DNA of 17,845 nucleotides from Octopus sinensis. Lineage: Eukaryota. Where the stretch lies: positions 1 through 17,845 of the forward strand of contig NW_021824719.1 in NCBI RefSeq assembly GCF_006345805.1. Direction: 5' to 3'. Under the pieces are notes generated by a model. It was not told where the DNA came from. It did no database searches and saw nothing but the letters and a program-made list of their open reading frames with translations. Positions 1,078 through 17,845 of this stretch are shown piece by piece; within the stretch, counting starts at the first letter, position 1; each line of letters opens with the position of its first letter. A program made the translations under genes and the position numbers.

Positions 1078-1120
1078 GAGTTCATAATTAAAAACAAGAC
1101 AAAAATTACAGATAGCTAAG

Positions 1121-4105
1121 TTAGTTAAAGGCCTCACGAGACACCCGACCAGCCGCGCGAATGGCGAAGACGTTCCCTCGGATCACAGCAATCGACAGAC
1201 GTTCCAGGAGCCAAGAAAACTCTCTTGGATCGTGACTAGTCCTTGAAATCCGTCGACCGAGCGAGCGAAGGAAGCGGAGTGTCTTGGGACCGAAGATCCC
1301 GGAGGACTCCAAGGCAATTGGAGTAAAGAGCAGCGAGTTGGACAGGTGGCCGTACTTGAGAATCTTTCGCTCCTCGGCCTGCCTGGAAGCGTGCCCAGGA
1401 TTGGCGGCGGACAGCGCGAGATTTCCCAGCGAGAACGTGTCCGAGCAGGTAGAATCCCAAATAAGGGATTTCCCCTGCTCGTAGGGGAAGGTGGACATGC
1501 CGTCAGGGCGTTTGCCATCCCCTCTATCCAATCCAACAGGTTCAAGGATAGACGGGATGCCTGCTGAGGCGAGGGCTCTCTGTACGACTGAGTTGAGTTC
1601 ACTGTGACGGGGGGCACGACCGGCACTCCGCCGGCAAGCGAGGGGATGCAAACCGTACTCGTCAACAGTTCCCCCACAACGGCATTTGTGCGACTGGCAG
1701 ATTTTCAGCCCGACACGGAGGGAGATTGCAATTCTTAGGCATTCCTTGTCCAACAGGTTCCCGATGGAAGGGAGAGGGAGAGCCTTTAACCAGACACCGC
1801 TGCTTTCACAGCGACCTGCACGGAGGCAAGCGACACGGTGTTGATTGGAGACAGGAAGCAGGCCTTCGAAGATTGCCTGACAAGAGATTTCGTCCCATTG
1901 GCGCTGTACAGATTGAGAGTTGGGCAGCTTCGAACCAAACCGAGCCTCCCACCGACCACGGGCTGCAGAGTAAACTTCAGACAATTTCCGTTCGGGGAGG
2001 TTTCTAAGAACGATGTCTGAGAGAGTACGAGAAGCGTGATGAGCGGATAGGAATGCCGGGAGGGCAAGATCGGAATAGGATCTCAAGCCAAGGCCACCCC
2101 AGCGCACAGGCAGGGATGCCTGAGTCCAGCCTGGATCGTCGAAAGCCAGATTGCAAAGAGAGCTCGTACCGAGCCTGAGGATATTGTCAAGGTCGGAAAG
2201 AAGGTCGCCTCTTTGAAAGCAGGGTGCACATCTTAGGGTGTAAAGGATCTTAGGGACGGAGAAGTGGTTTCGGAGGAGGAAAAAAGCCACATGAGGCTCG
2301 ATGACTTTAAGCTTGTCGATCATTTTGGATAAGTGGGAAATTTTTCCAGCGAGTGAGCATTCGAGGGCAGAAGGCCCCATGGGGGCACCGAGAATCGTAA
2401 GATTTGATTTGTCCGTAATCCGGACGTCTGAGAGAATGCCTCGGCACGTGGAAATTGAAGCAGTGAAGTCACTCGGATTTAAGGCAATGTTCACGATTTC
2501 GGATTTATTGGCGTTTATAGATAGGCCGATGTCCGAGAGGGAAGGGAGGATAGAACGAAGGTCGTCGAAAACAGCGTCGGGGGGACCGCAAATGGTTGCG
2601 TCATCCAGATACCATATGTTAACTGGGGATCGAACAGAGTGAGCGATACTGTTAACGCCCAAGGCAAAAAGGACAGGACCCAGGGGATCTCCCTGTTGGA
2701 CCCCGGTGGCCGAAGAGATGGGAACATCGTCAAACATGAGGATACTCGGAGAAGCGTATGAGAGATGTACAAGGGGATAAGCGAACGGAACCAGTTCGCG
2801 ACAGCACTCCAGCAGGTGGTCACGTCTGATGGAGTTGAAAGCGTTTGAGACGTCTAGTTTGACCATGATAGCCGACTGGGAAGATTCGATGAGTTCACGG
2901 AGAGAATGAACGGCCGCTTCGCAGCCGTTTGGGACACCGACCCCGAGTTGGGCGGGGAGAAACACTTGAGACAAAAAGGGGACAATTGCGTGGCACAGAA
3001 GTTTGGCAGAGAGCCTCCGAAAGATATTCCCAACGGCAATGGGTCTCACGCCGTTGTCCTTTTTCCCAAGGGCAGTAAGGTTGGCGGAAAAGAAAATATC
3101 ACGAGCAAAATCGGGGAGGGAACCGGAGATGAAGCGGTTGCACAGGTTGGTAATTGAGCGTAGGAGTTTTCGACCAGCTTCGGCGGTAGTGGGAGACGTC
3201 AGGTCTTTCAGATGACCTGGTCTCAGACCATCTACACCACCACTGCTTCCAGGTGAAAAGTCCCTCAGGGCTTTCAGTACAAGAGTTTCCGAGACAGCAA
3301 AAGGATTGAGAGCGAGGGTGTCAGGGGACGGCTGAGGCCTGAAGTCGTTTGGCTGAGGGGGATGTTTTTCCCTGAGGGAATTCAAAACAGCAGGGGTCGT
3401 GGGCAAAAGGGGACTTGTCGAGGCAACCAGCCTAACTGCACCACGAACGTCGCCGTCCAAGAGTTTACTATTAATCTTTCTGTTGAGGTAGTCGACGTCA
3501 TTCGCGTGAGAGGACACATTATGGGATGGTGAACCAGAGGGAAATTCGGAGCTAGCGAGGTGGTCCCGCAGCCAGCGGATGGAAAAAGAGTTCTTATCGT
3601 ACAAGGCCAATTCTTGTTTGACGGTTGTAGCCAGCGAAATGGAGGAGGTTTTCACACGGGCTCTTAATGGGGCAAAACCGAGACCAAAAGAGGCGAAGCA
3701 AAACAGCTTAAGCCAATCGGAATGGCCATCAGATGCCAAAGCCTTATCGATTGCGGCGGACAGGGAGGAGGCTGCAAAGATACGCGCAGCTTTTGGGATT
3801 CTGGATGGGATTTTCCGGAGACGACGGAAGAGCTTGATAGATTTGAGAACTTCCTCGGCAGACGGGGATGTTGCGAATGGCGGTTTTTCGGGGAGTTCTT
3901 GCGGGCTGGAACACTGAACCGGCTGGCAAGAGCGGCAGGAAGGACAGTCCCAAATTAAGAGAGAGGCAGAAACGCGCCTGGAAAGACGCACGCAAGAAAG
4001 GTGGAAGAATCTGTCGCAACTAGAACAGACTCTCCCTTTCTTGCGGTTGTTACTAACTTCGCAAGTAGAGCATAGAACAGAAGTGGGTTGGAAACAGAAA
4101 GACAT
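1121..4105 (-). CDS. CRE-type polyprotein, 994 aa: PHD finger + reverse transcriptase + CCHC zinc finger + restriction-like endonuclease
   Basis: First ATG at 4105 (the ORF-track start at 4264 is a TTG in low-complexity leader). PHD CSTC..CSSC..HLSC..WDCPSC (3935-4072); RT motifs GVRPIAVG, KLDVSNAFNS, GVQQGDPLGP, WYLDD; CRCG..HPLAC, RH, KRPDG..WD. No stops or frameshifts. Confidence 0.93.
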   Translation of the reverse strand: MSFCFQPTSVLCSTCEVSNNRKKGRVCSSCDRFFHLSCVRLSRRVSASLLIWDCPSCRSCQPVQCSSPQELPEKPPFATSPSAEEVLKSIKLFRRLRKIPSRIPKAARIFAASSLSAAIDKALASDGHSDWLKLFCFASFGLGFAPLRARVKTSSISLATTVKQELALYDKNSFSIRWLRDHLASSEFPSGSPSHNVSSHANDVDYLNRKINSKLLDGDVRGAVRLVASTSPLLPTTPAVLNSLREKHPPQPNDFRPQPSPDTLALNPFAVSETLVLKALRDFSPGSSGGVDGLRPGHLKDLTSPTTAEAGRKLLRSITNLCNRFISGSLPDFARDIFFSANLTALGKKDNGVRPIAVGNIFRRLSAKLLCHAIVPFLSQVFLPAQLGVGVPNGCEAAVHSLRELIESSQSAIMVKLDVSNAFNSIRRDHLLECCRELVPFAYPLVHLSYASPSILMFDDVPISSATGVQQGDPLGPVLFALGVNSIAHSVRSPVNIWYLDDATICGPPDAVFDDLRSILPSLSDIGLSINANKSEIVNIALNPSDFTASISTCRGILSDVRITDKSNLTILGAPMGPSALECSLAGKISHLSKMIDKLKVIEPHVAFFLLRNHFSVPKILYTLRCAPCFQRGDLLSDLDNILRLGTSSLCNLAFDDPGWTQASLPVRWGGLGLRSYSDLALPAFLSAHHASRTLSDIVLRNLPERKLSEVYSAARGRWEARFGSKLPNSQSVQRQWDEISCQAIFEGLLPVSNQHRVACLRAGRCESSGVWLKALPLPSIGNLLDKECLRIAISLRVGLKICQSHKCRCGGTVDEYGLHPLACRRSAGRAPRHSELNSVVQRALASAGIPSILEPVGLDRGDGKRPDGMSTFPYEQGKSLIWDSTCSDTFSLGNLALSAANPGHASRQAEERKILKYGHLSNSLLFTPIALESSGIFGPKTLRFLRSLGRRISRTSHDPREFSWLLERLSIAVIRGNVFAIRAAGRVSREAFN

Positions 4106-4268
4106 AGAAAGAGAGCAAGATAGAAACAATGAAAAAATGGATAACAAAGTGGAAAGAGAGAGATTATTAGATAGATGACAATTACAAAAATGGATTATAG
4201 AATAAGAAATGAACAAATGAAAAGAAAGAAATGAACAACAACAACAACGTGCAACAACGTGCAATTGA

Positions 4269-4746: not shown

Positions 4747-5838
4747 CTGGTCGAGGATGACGGAGAGTCTGGCCGACTTGTGCTGTTCCGGGCGAGGACC
4801 AGAAAAATAGACGATTGTGCTGTCGGAAAATCCATTCAATCGGTCTGTCATTAAGTAGAAGGTGTACCCAGTGCATATTCGAGGTCTCTTCGATAAACAA
4901 ACCCCGCCAACACTTTGTAGTGCCTGAACACGACCACTGGAAATCCGTTGTAGTTCGTTTCCTCGAGAATTTGTTCTGAAATGGAGAGAAATGAATACTG
5001 ATTTCGAAAATGGTCATTTTGTTCTGCTCGATGACAGTCAGTTCGGCCGAGTTGTCCCTGAGAGTGAATGCCCAACAAAACATTGCGTGGAGAACGTCAT
5101 TGGCCGTGCCACTCTCGGAAATCTCGTCCTTTCCGTCGAGGAAGGGGAAGCCGTTCAGGTGGATGTGTCGGTCGTATCTATGGAATAAAAGCAGTGCCTA
5201 CATCCCCTCCTTCCCTAACCAGTCAGTAATCCACTTGCTGGTCATGGTGGCCATTATTATGGGGATTATGTAGGAAATCCCGCCAGTCATCTCGTACATA
5301 ATCACCACCAGGGACACTACTATAAATACTCAATAACACCAGTCATTCGGGTGACCCCCCAAGTGTGGCGGCAGCTCACACAAGCGCGTACACTCCGGGG
5401 TTGATCACAGCCACCAGAGAAGTCGAGTTGATGTAGAACGTCCTACAATGACCACAGTCTCCAACCGGGCAATCTGCTGCACTCCTATGCCTACGATTCG
5501 CCCCATTATTGCCCCCGCACAAATCGTGGGAATGAATAATCCAGCAAGCACCTTCGAATAAGCCCACACAACACCTTCAGTCCAAACGTGGTCACCGTGA
5601 ACACAAATTTGAGGACAAGGATGATGACCAACTGCCACATGGAGGTATATATTCTAGCCCCAAAGAGAAGGGTTCCCCTGACGGTCCTGCCCGACCGAGT
5701 AGTCCCATTGGTAGTCACTAAGACTGGAAAAGTCCACTACCAGAGCGGATTGGAATTTCCGACGTGGCAGGCAGCAAAGAGTTGTCGGATGAAGGAATTG
5801 GAGTCCTGACGAGTGAAGGAGAAGGGGTATTGCATGTT
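4747..5838 (-). pseudogene. CLC-3/4/5-type H+/Cl- exchanger fragment (late TM helices + CBS1), 8 tiny introns
   Basis: Spliced: [123 protein letters not shown]. Introns 5718-5740, 5552-5574, 5443-5465, 5317-5339, 5178-5201, 5058-5081, 4976-4998, 4845-4867. TGA at 5376-5378, frameshift in G run 5355-5360. N-terminal half and CBS2 absent. Paralog not resolvable. Confidence 0.9.
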
Positions 5839-5839
5839 G

Positions 5840-6335
5840 AATCCAGCGGCGTTAAGCGCGCGCTTCACAACGTCATTCAATGAGGCGTGCCTGGGGATCC
5901 TGCCGGCACTGAGGCGACAAGAGAGAGGGTGTAAACCTCTCCTGTCAATGAGTTGTTCACATCTGCAATGGTGCGGCTGGCAATCTCTATGCCAAGCCGT
6001 AAACAGATTCCGATGCGGACCGATTCGTCGTCCAGGAACATGCTCGCTGACGAGATCGGTAACGCATTCAACTAATCTCCGAATGCGGTTGACAAGCACA
6101 ATTAATGCTTGCCAACTAAACTAATCGGCGTGTGACCGGATATCTTCAATTATGTGAGAACAATAAATGTTGTCCCAGTTCTTTTGAGCCGACGGAATGT
6201 CCGGGACTTTAAGCCCCCGAGAAACCCACACGTTGACACCAGCCGCATATTCCAACAACTCGCACTGTTCAGAAGAGGGAAAAAGAACAGAGTTGACGAA
6301 ATTAGTGGAAGCGGACAATGAAAACCGTAACGGGC
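5840..6335 (-). pseudogene. Degenerate fragment of a second, divergent CRE family (post-RT linker, CCHC finger, start of RLE)
   Basis: SAQKNWDNI..LNALPISSASMFLDDESVRIGICLRLG/..CRCEQLIDRRGLHPLSCRLSAGRIPRHASLNDVVKRALNAAGF, homologous to the C-terminal third of the intact ORF. Frameshifted, truncated at both ends before KRPDG. Confidence 0.85.
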
Positions 6336-7599
6336 TTACCATTGAAATAGTCTATAGAATCTTTTCTTTGAAATAACATTTGTTTGCTATATAATATTAC
6401 AAATGTTTTAATTTATTTTAAAATTTAAGTAAATTTAGAGTAATAAAATTCCGGAAATTTGAACAAACAAGTCTTTACGTAGTGCATTATATTTTGCCGT
6501 CAATTTTATAAAGTATGTTAATTTAAAACAATTTTTAATATAGAATAAACTCTAAATGTCAGAAAACCTTCTTTTTTCAATGTGTAATAAAATGGTGGAC
6601 AATTATGTGCGAAATAAATACAATAACCGCCTTGATTACACTTTGATAGAAACAATTTGAGAATGATTATGTCTCATTATTCGAGACAGCTTGTGCATTA
6701 GAGTTTGTTCTAATGTACATAAAACGGTGTTTCAATAAAGGGGACGACGGGTATAAGGTTGTGCTTGAGAACTTCTTACTGGACTTGATCATAGCCGGGA
6801 GAAAGCCAGAATGGCCTGGAGCAGATTTAATGTTGAGTATTCTCCTCAAATTACTTGTAAAATATTAAATTTGATTTTTATGTCAAACAATTCTCCAATA
6901 AGTCTTTGGAAGTTGTTTTCCGACTGCAAGCACTGGATTATATGATCATGGCAATCCCCCGCATACACGAGGACATGGAGGTATTCAAGGTCCGTCAAGT
7001 CTTCCTCACAAAGTTTCTCTAAAAAATATTTGGGGACACTTCTGAGGAGGGACACTTCTCGATTCTAAAGGCCCGATCAGAATTTATTACGTAATCTTTG
7101 ATTTCCTTGCCTTGAGGGGAAATGTGGGAATAGTTAGTATTGAGATCTACCCTTGTAGACTGCCAGGTCATTTTTGATTGGGAAATTAGTTCATTATTTG
7201 TCGGAGAAGGAAAATAAAGCCAAAATTAATGATTTGAGGAAATATCTTTCTCGCTCAGTCGATGAAATAGAACAGTCCTATAAAAACTGGAATTATCTTT
7301 GGATCATGAGAAGGTGAGTTCTTGCCTAGCCTTCATTCAATACCGGGGCCCATTTGTCCCCAATTTCGATAGTTTTCTCAAATTTGTCATCGTCCGAGTA
7401 ATACTACTTAAAAGAACTAGTAGATATTACAATGTTTAAGTGAGCCAATTGCCAATCTGAGAACTAAGGCAGAAAAATTTTTGAATTTTGTTGTGGATAT
7501 TTTTATATTTTCTATATAATAAAATCATTCAAAAATCACAATTTATTAATTAATATTATATATTATTGTATTTTATTTTTAAATTTTGCACGTTATCGA

Positions 7600-8039
7600 A
7601 TGTTTCTAATTACACTATCACAAGAGGATTTATTGAAAATAAAAACTTTTAAACAATTTTGAACATTTGATGACGGAATCAGTAGAAGAGAACGTTTTAG
7701 ATTACGTAGGATTGCTAACCGAATACTTATTGAGGAAAATATAGCCTACATATACCAAAGGAATAAAAAAGTCAGATTATTCTGCATAGAAGAACAAGAG
7801 TTAAAGCTGAAATATATAGAAGTATCAATTTATTTAATTATGATTAGTGTGAGCACAATTATGTACATTTTGGAAGAGATAAAATGTTTTCTATGCTTAA
7901 GGGAAAGATATATGGTGCAACTCGGGAAGAGATTAGCAAAATAATTGAAAAATGTGCTTATTGTCAGGTATTTAGTTAAATTATTCGATTTCAGTCTAAA
8001 AAATTACATTTTAGTCGGCTAAGGAAATTAAAAAAATAA
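7600..8039 (+). pseudogene. Ginger/GIN-like (Gypsy-integrase-related) transposase remnant: N-terminus + HHCC zinc domain, two tiny introns
   Basis: MFLITL..*TFDDGISRRERFRLRRIANRILIEENIAY..KYIE|CEHNYVHFGRDKMFSMLKGKIYGATREEISKIIEKCAYCQ|SKK..*. H-x3-H..C-x2-C integrase zinc motif. Introns 7822-7847 (26 nt) and 7968-7994 (27 nt), TGA at 7660. No DDE core. Confidence 0.7.
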
Positions 8040-8069
8040 TTTTTAATATTTTAAAATTGTTTCTAAATT

Positions 8070-8115
8070 AAAAAAATTCAAGTTAATCGACTAAAAAAAT
8101 TTAAGTTAATCGATA
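8070..8115. repeat. 23-bp tandem duplication downstream of the integrase remnant
   Basis: aaaaaaattcaagttaatcgact followed by aaaaaaatttaagttaatcgata. Confidence 0.7.
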
Positions 8116-8452
8116 AAACGTTATGTCGGGTCAAAAATGCGTTATGTTTGTTTTTTGTGGGGGAATAATATGAACTTTTATCCAAAAAAAACATAAAAAA
8201 CACTAATATGGTATACTTGGAGTAAGGTATATTTATTTTTTATTTATTTTTATAAATTTTTAAAACTGACTCACGTCTCGACTGTGACACATTTCTTAGA
8301 AGTGTATACTTTAATTGTTACTCGCAGGTATTCAAAGAATCTGGGGAGAACAGTGGCAATGTCTTGAAGGCAGCATTGCAGATTGTTGATTGTATAATAA
8401 CTAATGTAATAGCACTGGACGAGTCTATTGCCAGTTGTATGTTTTATACAAT

Positions 8453-9114
8453 AGAGTCAGGGAACGTAAGCTTGGCGCTCGTCCCGTAGCCACTACCAAC
8501 CAAACCGTTGACAGGTTGGTTGGCAAGGGGGAAAAATTGGTTCTGTTTGTTGCTGATGTGAAATCAGCATCCAATCGTCTCCACGAGAAGGTGAACCACA
8601 TGACGATCAATTTCTTGACAAATGCCGAACCCTAAATCACCCTGGCTACTTCCTCTGGCACTCCACTAACAACAGGAGAATAGTTCCGACCCTCGCGGAC
8701 AAAGTCCGCAAGCTTATACATCCCCTCCGGACATTAACCAGAAGGGGATTCACGACCTGGTGGCTACGAGGGCAATCAGATGTCTTGGAATAAACAAGCT
8801 TCTGGGACGCCTTCCGCCGCCAATTAATAAGATCGAATCCTCCCTCTCAAGAGAAGCCCGAGTGAACTTGGCTCGTCTCCGCTGTGGCCACCATACTGGC
8901 CTACACGATTATCGCATAAAAATCGGTCTTGGTGAAATAACCCCTTCCTATTCCCTCAACGACCTTTTCTCCTGTCCAGGCCCGCCTTCTACTTCCTCGG
9001 AACACCGGATCACGATCGGGGATCTTTGGAGGCGTCCGACATTGGCCCTAACGTTCTTGTTAGCCACCGGCTTTCTTCAATTGAAGGGGCCGGGGGTAAA
9101 TAAATAAAAAATAA
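8453..9114 (+). mobile_element. 5'-truncated LINE (I/Jockey-group-like C-terminus) with 14-bp TSD
   Basis: TSD atgttttatacaat at 8439-8452 and 9115-9128; 3' (TAAA)n/A-rich tail. KGIHDLVATRAI..NKLLGRLPPPINKIESSLSREARVNLARLRCG..LFSCP..LWRRP..FL resembles the C-terminus of I-group ORF2. Confidence 0.85.
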
Positions 9115-10163
9115 ATGTTTTATACAATTTAAGGACACTCTTGTTCGGAGGGGTATCATCCAAACAGATTGGTGTTATGTTATGAGACACTTGAGATATT
9201 TTCCCGCGTTCATCCAACGTTATTGACGTCACATTTGATGAAACTTCTGCCTTATTTGAGCAGTGCTGGATCGGTTACTCAGTTGTTGATTATTGTTCAG
9301 GCAGATAGTGGGATATAGAGAGCACATTAGAAATAGTACAGAACACGATAGGCCTTATTGACCACCCAGGTGATGCAATGATAGCACATTTGGAAGAACA
9401 GATCATACGAATACTACTACTCCAAGGAATCAACGTATTCTTGTAGTTCACATCTTAGGTCATTAGCAGTTCAGTCAAATGTCTAAGTATAATTGTCCGC
9501 ATTTCTAATAATAAAAAACTTGTTCAAGATTTCTTCAATCGATTTTTCAGTATTTTTATTAGCACTAATTAAGATATTCTTCGAATTAAGAAGGAAGAGA
9601 TCGAACGGAGTAGAACTATTGAGTCTAGTATAAAGTCTCACGTCAAGAGATCCCTTTATATCGTCGCCCTTCTCTGTCGGTTTTTTGACATTGAGAACGA
9701 GATTTTCAATTTTCAGAATGTTTGGATGTTTTTTGACATTCATAGGAACAGATTATACCCAAAATATTTGAAATGTGTTACTACTTTTGTGTATTTGAAG
9801 ACTCAGATCTGCGGTTTGAATCTTTAATGGCTCTTGGTTAGTCACTGTGTTGTATCGATAGGTAATTTGTTGGTACGTGGTCATCAATTTATGATTCAAG
9901 ATGAAATAAAAGTCCTTTATTTTGGAATATTGGAAGAGTGTGCCAACAATGTGCAGCTATGCATACAAGTTTTAACTAATCTGGAAATATTTATTGTCCA
10001 TCATTCCAAAACTGAGAACACAAACCGTTTGTGACTTCTCTGATATTATAGCACAAAGTTGCTATGCTTTTGTACAAGACATTCGAGAACATTCCGCCAA
10101 TACAACAACAGGGTTGCCATTTTCAATGAATTTTAGACTGGACAGTGCAATAACCCAAATATT

Positions 10164-10216
10164 TATGAGTCATAAATTATGACTCATATCCTGTCTTGTT
10201 CATAAATTATGACTCA
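10164..10216. repeat. 17-bp direct repeat overlapping a 25-bp palindrome
   Basis: tcataaattatgactca at 10170-10186 and 10200-10216; tatgagtcat-aaatt-atgactcata at 10164-10188. Confidence 0.85.
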
Positions 10217-10410
10217 GGACATTAGCATAAGGAATTGCTCTGTTAATCTCCTGAGCTAAATTACCCACTCTGGGTTAGTCCAACCTGTTGTTGTGATCTC
10301 ACACCTCATTGCACTCGCCTCTGACAGTGTTCTTGATATTAAATGTAAGGCAGTTGCCTTGCTTTCACATATCGAACGGAAAGAACCGGGATTTGTCCAC
10401 GTTGTATTCA

Positions 10411-12953
10411 ATCAACGAATTGTACCAGAATTCGATCAATATCGTCAAGCGACTTATCACAAACAGTCACAATTATTTGTCTAAATGGAAAAAATATCGG
10501 CCGATCTGGAAAGTGGACAAAGTAAAGCCTTTCAGCCCACCTAGGCAACAATCATTGAAAAATGGTTCAGCAAAGGCCCGTCCATCGTCGCTTTCGACGA
10601 CCAATTTCAGCTCTACATTAAAATCATCAAAGAAATAGAGAAAGCTAACGACATCCAAGACATTGAGTGTCTCCGAATAAACATGCAGCCTTTGGTTGGC
10701 TCTCTCAAAGAGCATGCAAACAAATGGACTGAATGTCTGGGAAATCATTTGCACGATTCGGTGAGAGACTCGTTATTCCACGTCCGAGATTATGTCAATG
10801 TTCACCTAACTGGATAATCAATAGAACAAATACAAACAACTGGCGGTTGAGCCCGAAACGTTGGAAGAGCTAAAATTTGTCTTGAAAGCAATTTCTGACA
10901 TCAAAAAAGATAGACTGGAGATTGAAGTAAAAATATACCAACTCCTCGAAGGCTATCGCTAAAAATCACAAAGTCAAATTAGACATTTGTCGATGTACGA
11001 ACTCCCCTATTCAGACGAGGAACGGGAGTTGGTGGAGACTATTAACGAGAAATGGCAGTCACTCGTGTACCAATCCAAAGTCAAAGACGTGGGCCTTACA
11101 CTTGTCGAGAGACGTTTTATTGAAGTATTCGCTCGCCATTAAAATTAGCTGACCAAAAATTCGATCATCGAGTTTTCCACCAAAGTAAAAGAATTCTCCG
11201 ATCGATACTTTGAATCCGGTCCCGGGCTGTGTGGAACTGTTTCCTGATTTTTGTCAATTTAGGGAAAGTTTGTTGGTCGATTTCAGTGGAGAACTCGAAA
11301 AACTGTTCACTGAACGCCAGGAAATTTTGAATGTTGAACACCTCTTTGATTTGGAAATTAGCAATCACCCCGAACTAAACAGAATTGAGAAAGACGTGGA
11401 AGGACTGAGGAAAATCTTTGCAATATATTTGGAACAGGGAATTTTCAGAACCTTTGACCTTTCACGTAGAAAGCGCGGGAAACCTGGGCAGAGATATTGT
11501 GGTCCAATTTAAATGTGCAGACTTTGAGCGAAAAAATCGACGAATTTTTGAAAGCGCTGAGAAAGCTAGCAAAAGAAATAAGAGGCTTCAAACTTTGGGG
11601 AATCGTCAAAAACAAAATAAAGCAATTCAAGGAATCGCTGCCCCTTTTTATTGATTTGAAGAACGAGGCCCTGAGAGAAAGGTACTCAGCCCCATAAACC
11701 CGCCAGGCACTGGAACAACTTGATGGAAAAGACTGGAAAGAGATTCGACATCAACCCAGACACGTTCACCCTCTCCAGCGTCTTTGAAATGAATTTGCAC
11801 GATTTCCAAGATGAAATCTCGAATATCGTGACATGTGCTATCAAGGAAATGGCGATCCTTTTCTTATTTCAGGGAATCAAAGAGATAGAGGACACGTGGA
11901 CGAACATGCGCTTCAGCATTTCAATGTACACCAAGGGCACTACCAATCGAGGGTAAATAATTGGGAGTGTCGAGGACATTCTGCAAATCATCGACGACAA
12001 CTCCCTCAATTTGCAGAGCATGGCTGCTTCTCGATTCGCAGCTCCCTTTGTCAACAGTGTGCGGCACTGGGAAAAGTCCTTGTCTCCGATCTCCGAAGTG
12101 ATCGACGTATTAGTCCCCAGTCAATTGAAGGTGTGGGTCAACGTCCAGCGCAAATGGATGTACTTGGAAGGAATTTTATTGCGGCGACATTCGAATGCAA
12201 CTTCCAGATGAAGCCAAAGTCTTTGACAGCCTTGAAAGACCTTCAAGTGGGTTGTTCCCGTCCTCCCACGGTAGATCATGCGGGAAACAGCCAAAAATAC
12301 GCGAATCAAATTTGCATGTCACGTCAAAGGTCGATTGAACGAAATGAACAGTCTGGCCGCAAGACTCGAAAAATGCCAGAAATTCCTGAATGACTACCTC
12401 GAGTCAAAACGAAACGTTTTCCTACGGTTTTTCTTTATTTCCGACGACGAACTGTTGAGCATTTTGGGAAGCAGTGATCCCGAATGTGTCCAGGAACACA
12501 TCATCAAAGTATGTGCTGTACACGACTCTAGATGTTCGATAACGTCAAGTCGTTAAAGTTCGACAAAGGAGGGAGTGGAGAGTTGTTGGTTTCCGCCATG
12601 ATTTCTGCGGAAAAGGAAATCATGGACTACAAGCAACCAATTTTGGCTGACGGGAAAGTGGAAGACTGGACGACGGACGTTCATAAGGAAATGCGGTCTT
12701 CCAACCGGCAGATCACAAAGGAGGCCATCTTCTATTATCGTTTCGAAGGGAAACCCAGGTTTGTCCAGTCCGGTGACGCCGCAGAATTTTGTGGATTAAA
12801 GACTACCAGGGCATGGTCTCTCTTGCCGCAATCCAGATTTGGTGGACCTGGGAAGTCGAAGATGTGTTTGAGAAAATCAGGAAAGGGAAGAAGACTCCGC
12901 TTAAGAAGTACCTGCAACTGCTTCATCATCAAATCAGCGACTTGGTGGTGCAG
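10411..12953 (+). pseudogene. DNAH10: Axonemal dynein heavy chain 10 fragment (tail/DHC_N2 linker region; no AAA ring)
   Basis: Spliced: YLSKWKKYRPIWKVDK..PETLEELKFVLKAI..LWSNLNVQ..LPLFIDLKNEALRERHW..VQRKWMYLEGIF..GDIRMQLPDEAK..LEKCQKFLNDYLESKRN..RFFFISDDELLSILGSSDPECVQEH..AMISAEKE..ITKEAIF..YQGMVSLAAIQIWWTWEVEDVF, close to recalled DNAH10. Nine canonical 23-26 nt introns. Lesions: TAA 11954-11956, CT donor 10959, lost donor near 11858, frameshifts near 11235, 12175-12183 and 12240. Confidence 0.92.
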
Positions 12954-12958
12954 GTATG

Positions 12959-13106
12959 ACACGTGAAGATCTGAGTATGGATCTTTACAATTACACAAAT
13001 CTTGTAGAAAATTTTATGACGCAAGCTTAGAGAGGGTAAGAAGGTTTAAGTCGACCTCAAACAAGATTTGTGTAATTGTAAAGATCCATACAAGATCTTC
13101 ACGTGT
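12959..13106. mobile_element. MITE-like element, 148 bp, ~46-bp terminal inverted repeats
   Basis: 12959-13005 acacgtgaagatctgagtatggatctttacaattacacaaatcttgt matches the reverse complement of 13061-13106 except for one small indel/mismatch. No clear TSD. Confidence 0.85.
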
Positions 13107-13321
13107 GTAATATCAATCGAGCTGAAAAACAAACTAAATTATTAATAGATTTATAAAAAAATAATAAAAGGTAACTTATATTATTTTTGGACGCTGAATT
13201 CAAAAATGTTATCAGATATGAGATCAGACCTTCAAACTTCGAGATCTAGAAATTGGTCCCTTATCTTTACGTAGAAATGTCTAACATAAAAATGAACTTG
13301 TTTTTTGAGTTCGCGAGAAAA

Positions 13322-13850
13322 TTTTAGCTAATACCAATGCATATTTCATCATTTCTCTTAATGCCTGCTTTGGCATTCCAGTCTCCTGTCAGAAATAAGA
13401 CTGTTGTCTTGTTTAATACGTTGCATAATTCTGAGAGGCTTGCGTAAAACTTGTCCAACTCATCAGAAGCAACCAACAGTCTCCCCGTATGGGGTGCGTA
13501 CACGTTGATGATGGATAAAGTATTACTTCCTTTCGATTTCAATTTGATTTGAAGAATCGCGATGCGGTCATTAACACTCCAGACTTTGAGTTCACTCTTT
13601 TCCAGCGAGGCTCGAACAGTGAATCCCAATCCGTAGTGTCGGCACTCAGAGGGGAGAAATATAAGGCGGTATTTTCCATAAGCTTCATCTGCCCTTCCGC
13701 GACCTTCGTCTCTTGAAGACAGCACACATCAACCCCGTAACGGTCTAGGTCGTCGCATAAGGTATTCCGTTTTGACTTCGCTGACAGTCCTCTAACATTA
13801 AAAGAAACAATAGTAAAAGGCCTCGATCGAATAGAACATGTTTGAGACAT
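13322..13850 (-). pseudogene. RTE-like LINE 5' fragment: AP-endonuclease domain
   Basis: FTIVSFNVRGL..DLDRYGVDVCCLQETK/..HYGLGF..VNDRIAILQI..IINVYAPH..FYASL..LTGDWNAKAG..CIG. One frameshift near 13690; truncated after the GDWNA motif. Confidence 0.88.
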
Positions 13851-14123
13851 ATCAAAGAGAGGTACGTCACCACCTCAACCAATCTTAATGGCCGCATGGC
13901 CATATGGATAGTAATCCATAAACTGAAAGTTCAAATCACAGCAAAAGGCGTATAAATGCGAATCTTGAATACTATCTAGTAAAAAGATTATATTTTGAGA
14001 ACCAAGTCTAATTATGTTGAATTTAACTTTATTTATTTAGTTACAAAAAATTATTTTGATTTATTTTAAAAAGCATGTCATCTAATTCGTCGTCACGTAG
14101 GTTTAAGCGCAAAATTTACATAC

Positions 14124-17000: not shown

Positions 17001-17845
17001 CGAGATCTCCACTTGTGTGCAACCAATCGACCTGATTTTTTCCAGGACAACTGCCTCCCTTGATGGTATACTATATTCACTTGTTCAACCTCCTCTAAAC
17101 CTTTTTACTATCTCATACTAAGGAACTATGTACGATCTAACTTAAGATGTCAGACTTACAATGTAAATAAGAAAATAAATAAATTAATAAATTAAAAATA
17201 TTGTTATATATCAATTTTGATGTTTTATTAACGTTTTTGCATGCTAAACTGGAGTCAGACGTTCCTAGACCTTAGTTTCTTTATAGGCCACTACAATGTA
17301 TGCTAATGGCCTATCCATAAGGACCCTTCTAGAAGAGGCCTGGAATTATGCAGTTTATTGATAAAATCTCTAGAATACATTAACAAATGCCCTAAAATAT
17401 TAAAAATCAGTCAATTAACAAATTTGAAAAGCTGAACTGTCTGAACTTTAGATATTTCTAACTAAAAATGAGTCTTTATTTCCCGACAAAACACCCCCCG
17501 AGATCTCCACTTGTGTGCAACCAATCGACTTGATTTTTCCAGGACAACTGCCTCCATTGATCGTCTATTATATTAATATGTTCAACCTCCTCTAAACCTT
17601 TTTACTATTTCATACTAAGGAACTATGTACGATCTAACTTAAGATGTCAGACTTACAATGAAATAAGAAAATAAATAAATAATAAATTAAAAATATTTTA
17701 TATATCAATTTTAATGTTTTATTAACGTTTTTGCATGCAAAACGGAGTCAGACGTTCCTAGACCTTAGTTTCTTTATAGGCTACTACAATGAATGATAAT
17801 GGCCTATACATAAAAACCCTTCTAAAAGAGGCCTGGAATTATGCA
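17001..17845. repeat. 498-bp tandem duplication (second copy runs off the window end)
   Basis: cgagatctccacttgtgtgcaaccaatcgac.. starts at 17001 and 17499; the copies align with scattered substitutions and small indels to the end of the window. Confidence 0.95.

Follow-up and report, generated by a model that had tools for sequence, protein, structure and literature searches.

An intron-like junction between decayed NIPBL and DNAH10 gene fragments, probably a non-functional join of DNA at a NIPBL 5' splice site

The stretch of DNA analyzed here (the window) comprises 17,845 nucleotides (nt) of contig NW_021824719.1 of the Octopus sinensis assembly GCF_006345805.1. On its plus strand, a fragment related to the cohesin loader NIPBL is followed by a gene fragment of a DNAH10-type axonemal (ciliary) dynein heavy chain, and a GT...AG segment of the size of the very short introns (mini-introns) retained by both fragments lies at the junction. 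We propose, with a probability of about 0.55, that the junction is a non-functional join made at the DNA level between decaying NIPBL and DNAH10 fragments, with its breakpoint in, or just after, the NIPBL mini-intron that followed the exon ending in GFVH.

Plus-strand frame 3 of the NIPBL side reads ...SHIERKEPGFVHV, with 10403 as its last base (...ITHSGLVQPVVVISHLIALASDSVLDIKCKAVALLSHIERKEPGFVHV in a longer translation ending at the same base), and this end matches both human NIPBL (...EIDKKYAGFIHM) and the Pfam family Nipped-B_C. The following 25 nt, 10404-10428, are gtattcaatcaacgaattgtaccag (GTATTC...CCAG), and frame 1 from 10429 onwards reads NSINIVKRLITNSHNYLSKWKKYRPIWKVDK, a DNAH10-type dynein sequence. 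A further GT is present at 10401, and the unit under study is the following.

10401-10428, plus strand: junction unit, GTTGTATTCAATCAACGAATTGTACCAG; 28 nt, GTTGTA...CCAG (25 nt if counted from the GT at 10404)

Removal of 28 nt (from 10401) or of 25 nt (from 10404) would join the two frames in phase 0, as ...GFVH(V)NSINIVKRL.... An earlier note on this DNA, made from the sequence alone, had pointed out the 25-nt GT-AG segment, its likeness to other introns of the window, and the phase-0 connection to the dynein frame at 10429; each of these observations holds. The gtattc start recurs in the mini-introns at 9435-9458 (NIPBL) and 11125-11148 (dynein), the length of 25 or 28 nt falls within the range of 23-32 nt spanned by the 12 introns of the window that are defined by homology, and the ends carry the usual signals (GT, in most cases GTA, and AG) whether the unit is taken from 10404 or from 10401. 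The phases on the two sides are compatible, for which the chance expectation is 1/3. Colinearity is where the unit departs from an intron: with NIPBL on one side and DNAH10 on the other, its excision restores no single-gene protein. The junction shows neither a poly(A) tract nor flanking direct repeats.

Four in-phase GT..AG pairs occur at the junction, three of them ending at 10428 (starting at 10395, 10401, and 10404) and the fourth spanning 10422-10449; the AG at 10427-10428 is the only one at a suitable distance from the donor. Near a random boundary, 12% of positions have an in-phase GT..AG pair of 20-32 nt; with GTA as the obligatory start, the share falls to 2.5%. The GT...AG fit is out of the ordinary, yet it is not compelling. 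With the donor held fixed, an in-phase AG lies 20-32 nt downstream at 23% of positions, and an AG in any phase at 61%. If the donor was inherited from NIPBL, the in-phase AG at the right distance is thus the only coincidence left. The hexamer GTATTC is not specific to donors since it is also present within a NIPBL exon, at 6837.

On the donor side, the Nipped-B_C score climbed residue by residue up to 10400, from 25.9 bits for a translation ending in ...KE to 30.1 bits for one ending in ...PGFVH; shuffling of the same six residues gave 25.4-26.8 bits. Extensions past 10403 behaved alike whatever their nature, with 32.9 bits for the unspliced frame 3, 33.0 bits for the sequence spliced to dynein, and 29.0-32.5 bits for shuffled residues. 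Continuation of NIPBL in frame through the 25 nt, as seemingly indicated by a Pfam alignment reaching 10448, was rejected because the corresponding gain of 2.5 bits equaled that of the spliced-to-dynein version and that of one shuffled control. No continuation of NIPBL downstream from 10403 was detected anywhere in the window by tblastn with vertebrate NIPBL or by the profile.

Introns of NIPBL were searched for with a segment of the human protein, which served as a seed only; the database entries matched it with 97-100% identity. The search returned many exon-sized open reading frames (ORFs) of vertebrate genomic contigs. Those covering the upstream exon read ...KKY[ST]GFIH and then V-S..., which is the translation of GTx AGx, and those covering the downstream exon read ...fq/MKAVAGMK, the slash marking the boundary. 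Vertebrate NIPBL therefore contains a phase-0 intron located exactly between GFIH and M. Since the NIPBL homology of the window ends at the codon of the vertebrate intron, and a GT comes next (gtt gta ttc), the GT at 10401 or at 10404 is most likely the native 5' splice site of NIPBL, retained by inheritance. The exon more likely ends at 10400 (...GFVH) than at 10403. The earlier note had ended NIPBL at 10403, after ..PGFVHV; the reading frame does run to that base, but the gain in Nipped-B_C score and the vertebrate intron both favor the shorter exon. Conservation of NIPBL introns is not universal, since the neighboring vertebrate intron (HPVQ/C) is missing from the window.

On the acceptor side, alignments with DNAH10 chains of the PDB begin at 10438-10444 (10438-10462 when pairwise alignments are included). 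The frame-1 translation was scored, with and without upstream residues, on a profile of 199 positions derived from 53 DNAH10-family sequences covering the region. The score was 108.2 bits for a start at 10429 and 110.3 bits upon addition of the eight codons 10405-10428 (YSINELYQ). This gain of 2.1 bits, obtained in an ungapped alignment, was matched by 1% of shuffles and by 0.5% of random 8-mers. Extension up to 10387 led to 112.5 bits, also without a gap, a value reached by 0.5% of random 21-mers. The DNAH10 family is poorly conserved around the junction position. The reading of 10405-10428 as dynein coding sequence is favored (p about 0.01), on weak evidence. The earlier note had mentioned this reading (SINELYQ) as an alternative to its own, and on the DNAH10 profile the segment outperformed 99% of shuffles.

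In the DNAH10 gene of Heterobilharzia, the junction position falls inside a single exon (residues 358-451), with no intron there. The introns present in the window at 10522 and 10800 are shared with that gene, and the next two are not. This comparison is suggestive only, because just two of the first four dynein mini-introns are shared. The start of the predicted protein P0199, at the residue equivalent to 10429, was also considered as an exon boundary and discarded, as it is merely an in-frame Met chosen by the ORF call. The body of the junction unit, with its AG, may derive from the dynein exon, from the rest of the NIPBL intron, or from filler. The beginning of the dynein exon is the most likely of these sources, and the rest of the NIPBL intron is less likely.

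The NIPBL side consists of two parts, defined by alignment with NIPBL structures of the PDB.

6650-6980, plus strand: NIPBL-like part 1, HEAT region (PDB 7w1m_E residues 367-460, E=4e-19)
6857-6881, plus strand: mini-intron-like segment of part 1, 25 nt, GT..AT; its excision leads to a continuous alignment
9160-10400, plus strand: NIPBL-like part 2, extending into Nipped-B_C (PDB NIPBL residues 839-998 and 1147-1192) and ending in ...KEPGFVH
9435-9458, plus strand: NIPBL mini-intron, 24 nt, gtattc...ag; its excision restores the alignment

Together, these parts extend over residues 367-1192 of the PDB chain, with a gap filled by transposable elements (TEs) between them. A remnant of a retroelement zinc finger (Integrase_H2C2, 7848-7976, plus strand) lies within this gap. 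By tblastn with vertebrate NIPBL, homology was detected at 9891-10403. The acceptor of the segment at 6857-6881 is probably mutated. Part 2 contains in-frame TAA codons at 9570, 9825, and 10257 and at least two changes of frame, at about 9300 and within 10034-10260. In the same part, tcataaattatgactca is directly duplicated at 10169-10215, in copies about 30 nt apart, and the NIPBL homology is broken there; this has the appearance of a small lesion, either an insertion or a duplication.

The dynein side extends over the end of the tail, the coiled coil, and the linker, and retains ten mini-introns.

10429-12956, plus strand: DNAH10-type heavy chain (tail end, coiled coil, linker DHC_N2), about residues 1090-1860 of about 4,500
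10522-10544, plus strand: mini-intron i1, 23 nt, position shared with Heterobilharzia DNAH10
10800-10824, plus strand: mini-intron i2, 25 nt, position shared with Heterobilharzia DNAH10
10959-10982, plus strand: mini-intron, 24 nt, donor CT, dead
11125-11148, plus strand: mini-intron, 24 nt, gtattc start
11438-11469, plus strand: mini-intron, 32 nt, donor GG (GG...AG)
11682-11706, plus strand: mini-intron, 25 nt
11954-11956, plus strand: TAA where RG[YF]ILGS has its conserved Tyr/Phe, a dynein lesion
12107-12130, plus strand: mini-intron, 24 nt
12247-12274, plus strand: mini-intron, 28 nt
12509-12531, plus strand: mini-intron, 23 nt
12759-12784, plus strand: mini-intron, 26 nt

The DNAH10 assignment relies on PDB chains determined by cryo-electron microscopy (9fqr_K2 and 8j07_k8, E=1e-44 to 1e-49) and on Pfam matches to DHC_N2 and DYH2-5-8_CC; the homology ends at 12956 in tblastn searches with DNAH10 orthologues. 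Removal of the mini-introns made the alignment colinear with these orthologues and explained most of the apparent frameshifts. Those that remained were located at about 11226-11232, 12175-12185, and 12243, at short homopolymer runs (ccc/ggg, tttt, tt), and an in-frame oddity was found at 11858-11875. Reading of the dynein stops at 10959-10962, where the dead CT donor is followed by an in-frame TAA. The non-canonical ends at 11438-11469 (GG...AG) and 6857-6881 (GT...AT) are either point lesions of splice sites or the ends of tolerated non-canonical introns. The best protein homologues of the stitched dynein model were only 42-44% identical, with none above 44%.

Counted over the two pieces, the lesions include four TAA codons in frame, two dead donors, and a minimum of four frameshifts. 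Both pieces are unprocessed, the dynein one having kept ten mini-introns and the NIPBL one two. The retained introns, the lesions, and the truncations identify both pieces, as judged from sequence, as probable decayed pseudogene fragments. A chimeric gene would be interrupted upstream from the junction by the TAA at 10257 and downstream from it by the dead donor at 10959-10962, the frameshifts, and the TAA at 11954; after the last stop (10257), the sequence up to the junction contains no ATG. Thus, no chimeric protein can be made today, which agrees with the statement of the earlier note that both halves carry stops. The four in-frame stops (9570, 9825, 10257, and 11954) are all TAA, whereas the expected share of TAA among one-step stops is 42% (p = 0.03). 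Use of TAA as a sense codon was considered and rejected because p reached only 0.03, the aligned residues differ, and the intact ORF of a long interspersed nuclear element (LINE) in the window ends in TAA. A change of the genetic code is therefore not indicated.

The following course of events would account for these observations. The NIPBL piece would end with its exon (...GFVH, 10400), at an ancient intron position, and would have retained its own GT (10401 or 10404). Breakage and rejoining of DNA would then have attached a piece of DNAH10 starting in mid-exon at most 45 nt further on, most likely a few bases past the donor; end joining, template switching, or a deletion between neighboring fragments could each have produced the join. 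In this event, 10405-10428 would be dynein coding sequence, and its TAC-CAG would provide the AG fortuitously. The outcome would be a look-alike of a mini-intron of 25 or 28 nt, in phase by a chance of 1 in 3, with a donor that is real but orphaned. The exact breakpoint, the joining mechanism, and the existence of intact parents of both fragments in the same genome are parts of this proposal that we infer. Several observations weigh against the proposed join. The intron after GFIH was seen in vertebrate NIPBL only, and in no spiralian. The breakpoint is resolved no more finely than 10401-10444. About half of the gain on the dynein profile (about 2 bits, at 10384-10393) is located in what is clearly NIPBL exon, implying either that such gains arise by chance or that the join used microhomology. 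The sharing of only two of the four introns with Heterobilharzia leaves some room for a lineage-specific dynein intron at the junction. Finally, every dynein frameshift is at a homopolymer run, and part of the decay could be consensus error of a long-read assembly.

Among the competing explanations, the whole unit of 28 nt (or 25 nt) could be an intact native mini-intron of NIPBL, followed by a breakpoint at 10429-10443, with the dynein phase set by chance and a dead product. The donor at a conserved NIPBL intron position, a length typical of the 12 local mini-introns, the sole suitably distant AG at 10427-10428, and the weakness of the dynein homology before 10438 all agree with this explanation. 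It is nonetheless doubtful because 10405-10428 scores better as coding sequence on the dynein profile, with p about 0.01, because the zone 10429-10443 is a priori a smaller target than the body of the intron, and because NIPBL-like residues are absent after 10428. Conversely, the GT...AG unit could be entirely fortuitous, with a breakpoint at about 10390-10400 in microhomology, a dynein exon starting from about 10390 (RDLSTLYSINELYQ...), and an end of the NIPBL exon matched by chance. The ungapped DNAH10 profile alignment indeed goes back to R31/D32 (10387-10390), matching a conserved D and a hydrophobic column, for a total gain of 4.3 bits, which 0.5% of random 21-mers reach; but the NIPBL match gains 4.2 bits from PGFVH, compared to -0.5 to +0.9 bits from the same residues shuffled, and the chance for the homology to end at the codon of the vertebrate intron and to be followed by GT is about 6% x 1/8. 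We consider this explanation unlikely. A little less probable again is an artefact of assembly, in the form of a chimeric join or a collapsed repeat in a draft hybrid of long and short reads, with some frameshifts as consensus errors. The three or four frameshifts of the dynein piece, which all fall at short homopolymer runs, and the merging of Illumina and PacBio assemblies in the published Dicyema japonicum genome (PMC6736024), are in line with such an artefact. Substitution lesions (four TAA, donors changed from GT to CT or GG, and an acceptor changed from AG to AT) are not typical of assembly error, and the 17.8-kb window as a whole is a patchwork of TEs and truncated fragments rather than two clean genes.

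The earlier note had favored exon shuffling, namely that recombination through a mini-intron fused the NIPBL HEAT region in frame to the dynein tail and linker, in a gene that was once expressed and spliced and later decayed. The phase-0 compatibility, the native-looking donor at a conserved intron position, and the low frequency of GTA...AG units near a random boundary (2.5%) are as expected from such an event. Only half of the proposed mini-intron held up: its donor is at the position of a conserved NIPBL intron, but its acceptor is at no demonstrated intron position, since no intron was seen there in the DNAH10 gene of the schistosome Heterobilharzia, and the favored dynein-coding reading of the segment places the dynein breakpoint within an exon. 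Both partners are internal fragments with truncated outer ends, NIPBL is split by TE debris, the halves are similarly or more heavily decayed, no intact ORF or start codon is present, and a search of one contig collection did not turn up the junction pattern. Exon shuffling was therefore not upheld and is, in our estimate, very improbable. The same low estimate applies to a hybrid mini-intron, comprising the 5' splice site of NIPBL and a 3' part from DNAH10, that would once have spliced HEAT to dynein in frame before its death, whether by shuffling or by de novo formation of an intron of about 25 nt. Equally hard to credit is a lineage-specific native mini-intron of DNAH10 at 10404-10428, the dynein fragment starting at the first base of this intron and abutting the NIPBL exon. 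Two of the four neighboring dynein mini-introns are likewise missing from the schistosome gene, and the gtattc donor is used by the dynein intron at 11125-11148, but each of the two genes would have to be broken precisely at an exon/intron boundary, the schistosome gene lacks an intron at this position, and the segment scores as coding. Retrocopying, or template switching by a LINE, was rejected because both fragments keep their introns and because the junction shows no poly(A) or flanking direct repeat. A repeat search revealed no pair of terminal inverted repeats or direct repeats bracketing 6650-12956, Helitron termini not being specifically searched; a foldback at 12975-13091 was the only structure found.

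Searches for relatives were negative within their respective scopes. No relative of the locus was found among metagenome contigs, a gapped DNA pattern fitting the spliced and unspliced junction had no match in one contig collection, no contig on record encoding the LINE ORF of the window was returned, and Rfam and tRNA scans gave no match. The join between NIPBL and DNAH10 fragments is surrounded by the following features.

1121-4264, minus strand: intact LINE-like ORF with PHD and reverse transcriptase (RT) domains, ending in TAA
4733-5653, minus strand: C-terminal half of a CLC chloride channel/transporter, with Voltage_CLC helices and a CBS-like YNGFPVV, in several frames
5740-6120, no strand given: C-terminal fragment of a LINE, which cuts off the CLC fragment upstream
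12975-13005 and 13061-13091, no strand given: inverted repeat with perfect arms of 31 nt separated by 55 nt; as an imperfect repeat, its arms reach about 47 nt (12957-13108)
13327-13874, minus strand: remnant of a LINE apurinic-endonuclease (APE) domain without the RT part

With the NIPBL and DNAH10 pieces, the CLC piece brings to three the gene fragments found amid remains of LINEs and elements with long terminal repeats (LTRs). The inverted repeat is located directly 3' of the last dynein-homologous codon (12956), and its outer part resembles 17001-17040 and 17499-17538; sequence of this kind recurs in the repeats of about 495 bp that close the window on the right. The inverted repeat could be a small foldback element, similar to a miniature inverted-repeat transposable element, or the scar of a fold-back rearrangement at the 3' breakpoint of the dynein. 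The AT-rich right end (17037-17845) contains two copies of the repeat of about 495 bp, 87-93% identical and tandem-like, which may represent a satellite or else the margin of a larger repeat array. A LINE truncated at its 3' end, such as that at 13327-13874, is unusual and implies a later deletion or rearrangement.

The transposon-rich DNA of the window belongs to a dicyemid-type animal genome, most likely that of Dicyema. This assignment is based on the ultra-short GTa...AG introns, with a LINE and repeat content that fits D. japonicum. The ciliary dynein presumably argues for a ciliated dicyemid over a myxozoan. Among animals, introns of 23-32 nt with GTa...AG signals only are reported in Dicyema japonicum and myxobolids alone; the median intron is 22-27 nt in myxobolids, and D. 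japonicum is described as having similarly short introns (PMC13644364). O. sinensis hosts D. japonicum, the genome of which is LINE-rich, consists of repeats for 49%, and is available as RDEW00000000 together with RNA-seq reads (SRR8061618 and others) (PMC6736024). The LINE of the window (1110-3351) matched a locus of contig VCDQ01003444.1 of the O. sinensis assembly GCA_006345805.1, with 85% protein identity and 85.9% DNA identity over 2,243 nt. Beside this LINE copy, a GT-AG intron of 32 nt interrupts a Peptidase_M3 gene; the peptide scored 81.1 bits once spliced, compared to 42.9 and 21.7 bits for the two halves. The LINE copy and this gene are covered by 8745-10986 and 12061-12945 of the locus. 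This contig labeled as octopus is thus itself most likely dicyemid DNA, and the octopus assembly probably holds contigs of the parasite (Dicyema) annotated as octopus genes. Transfer of the LINE from host to parasite was set aside as less likely in view of the 32-nt Peptidase_M3 intron, and horizontal transfer is not needed if the contig is dicyemid.

In genomes with ultra-short introns, dead junctions easily mimic introns. Since GTa...AG signals carry little information, homology to orthologues and intron positions are needed before an intron is called. If the junction was ever spliced, rearrangement can combine exon sequence with half of an old intron into a functional intron of about 25 nt, and exon shuffling is possible even with tiny introns as targets. 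The dicyemid-type genes, the 32-nt introns, and the LINE family of the window that are found on an O. sinensis contig in GenBank may be of more practical use.

The junction unit resembles the ultra-short introns of Dicyema japonicum and myxobolids (PMC13644364; PMC6736024), which are 22-32 nt long, have GTa...AG ends, and are often at positions shared with other animals, in its size, its ends, and the location of its donor at a conserved NIPBL intron position. It differs from them in that a true intron lies within one gene, its removal restoring a protein colinear with the orthologues, whereas the flanks of the junction belong to two genes, the 3' side is not at a known intron position, and splicing is predicted only. 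Unprocessed or mosaic pseudogenes in repeat-rich DNA share with the two fragments the retention of introns, the truncation of both ends, the nonsense, frameshift, and splice lesions, and the proximity of TE pieces and unrelated gene pieces. In contrast to these, duplication is only deduced here, and a breakpoint at or in a mini-intron has left a join that is formally splice-able and in frame. The phase-0 join of an exon end to another gene through an intron-like unit recalls exon shuffling by intronic recombination, but the second breakpoint is not demonstrably intronic, no intact ORF is present, and the introns offer targets of only about 25 nt. Gene capture by TEs (Helitron, Pack-MULE/Pack-CACTA) and chimeric retrocopies made by LINEs also place unrelated fragments next to each other and to TEs, here two of them in the same orientation. 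However, the NIPBL-dynein block is not flanked by terminal repeats or target-site duplications, the introns exclude retrocopies, and no Helitron ends were identified, their termini not being specifically searched. A once-functional chimera has no positive support.

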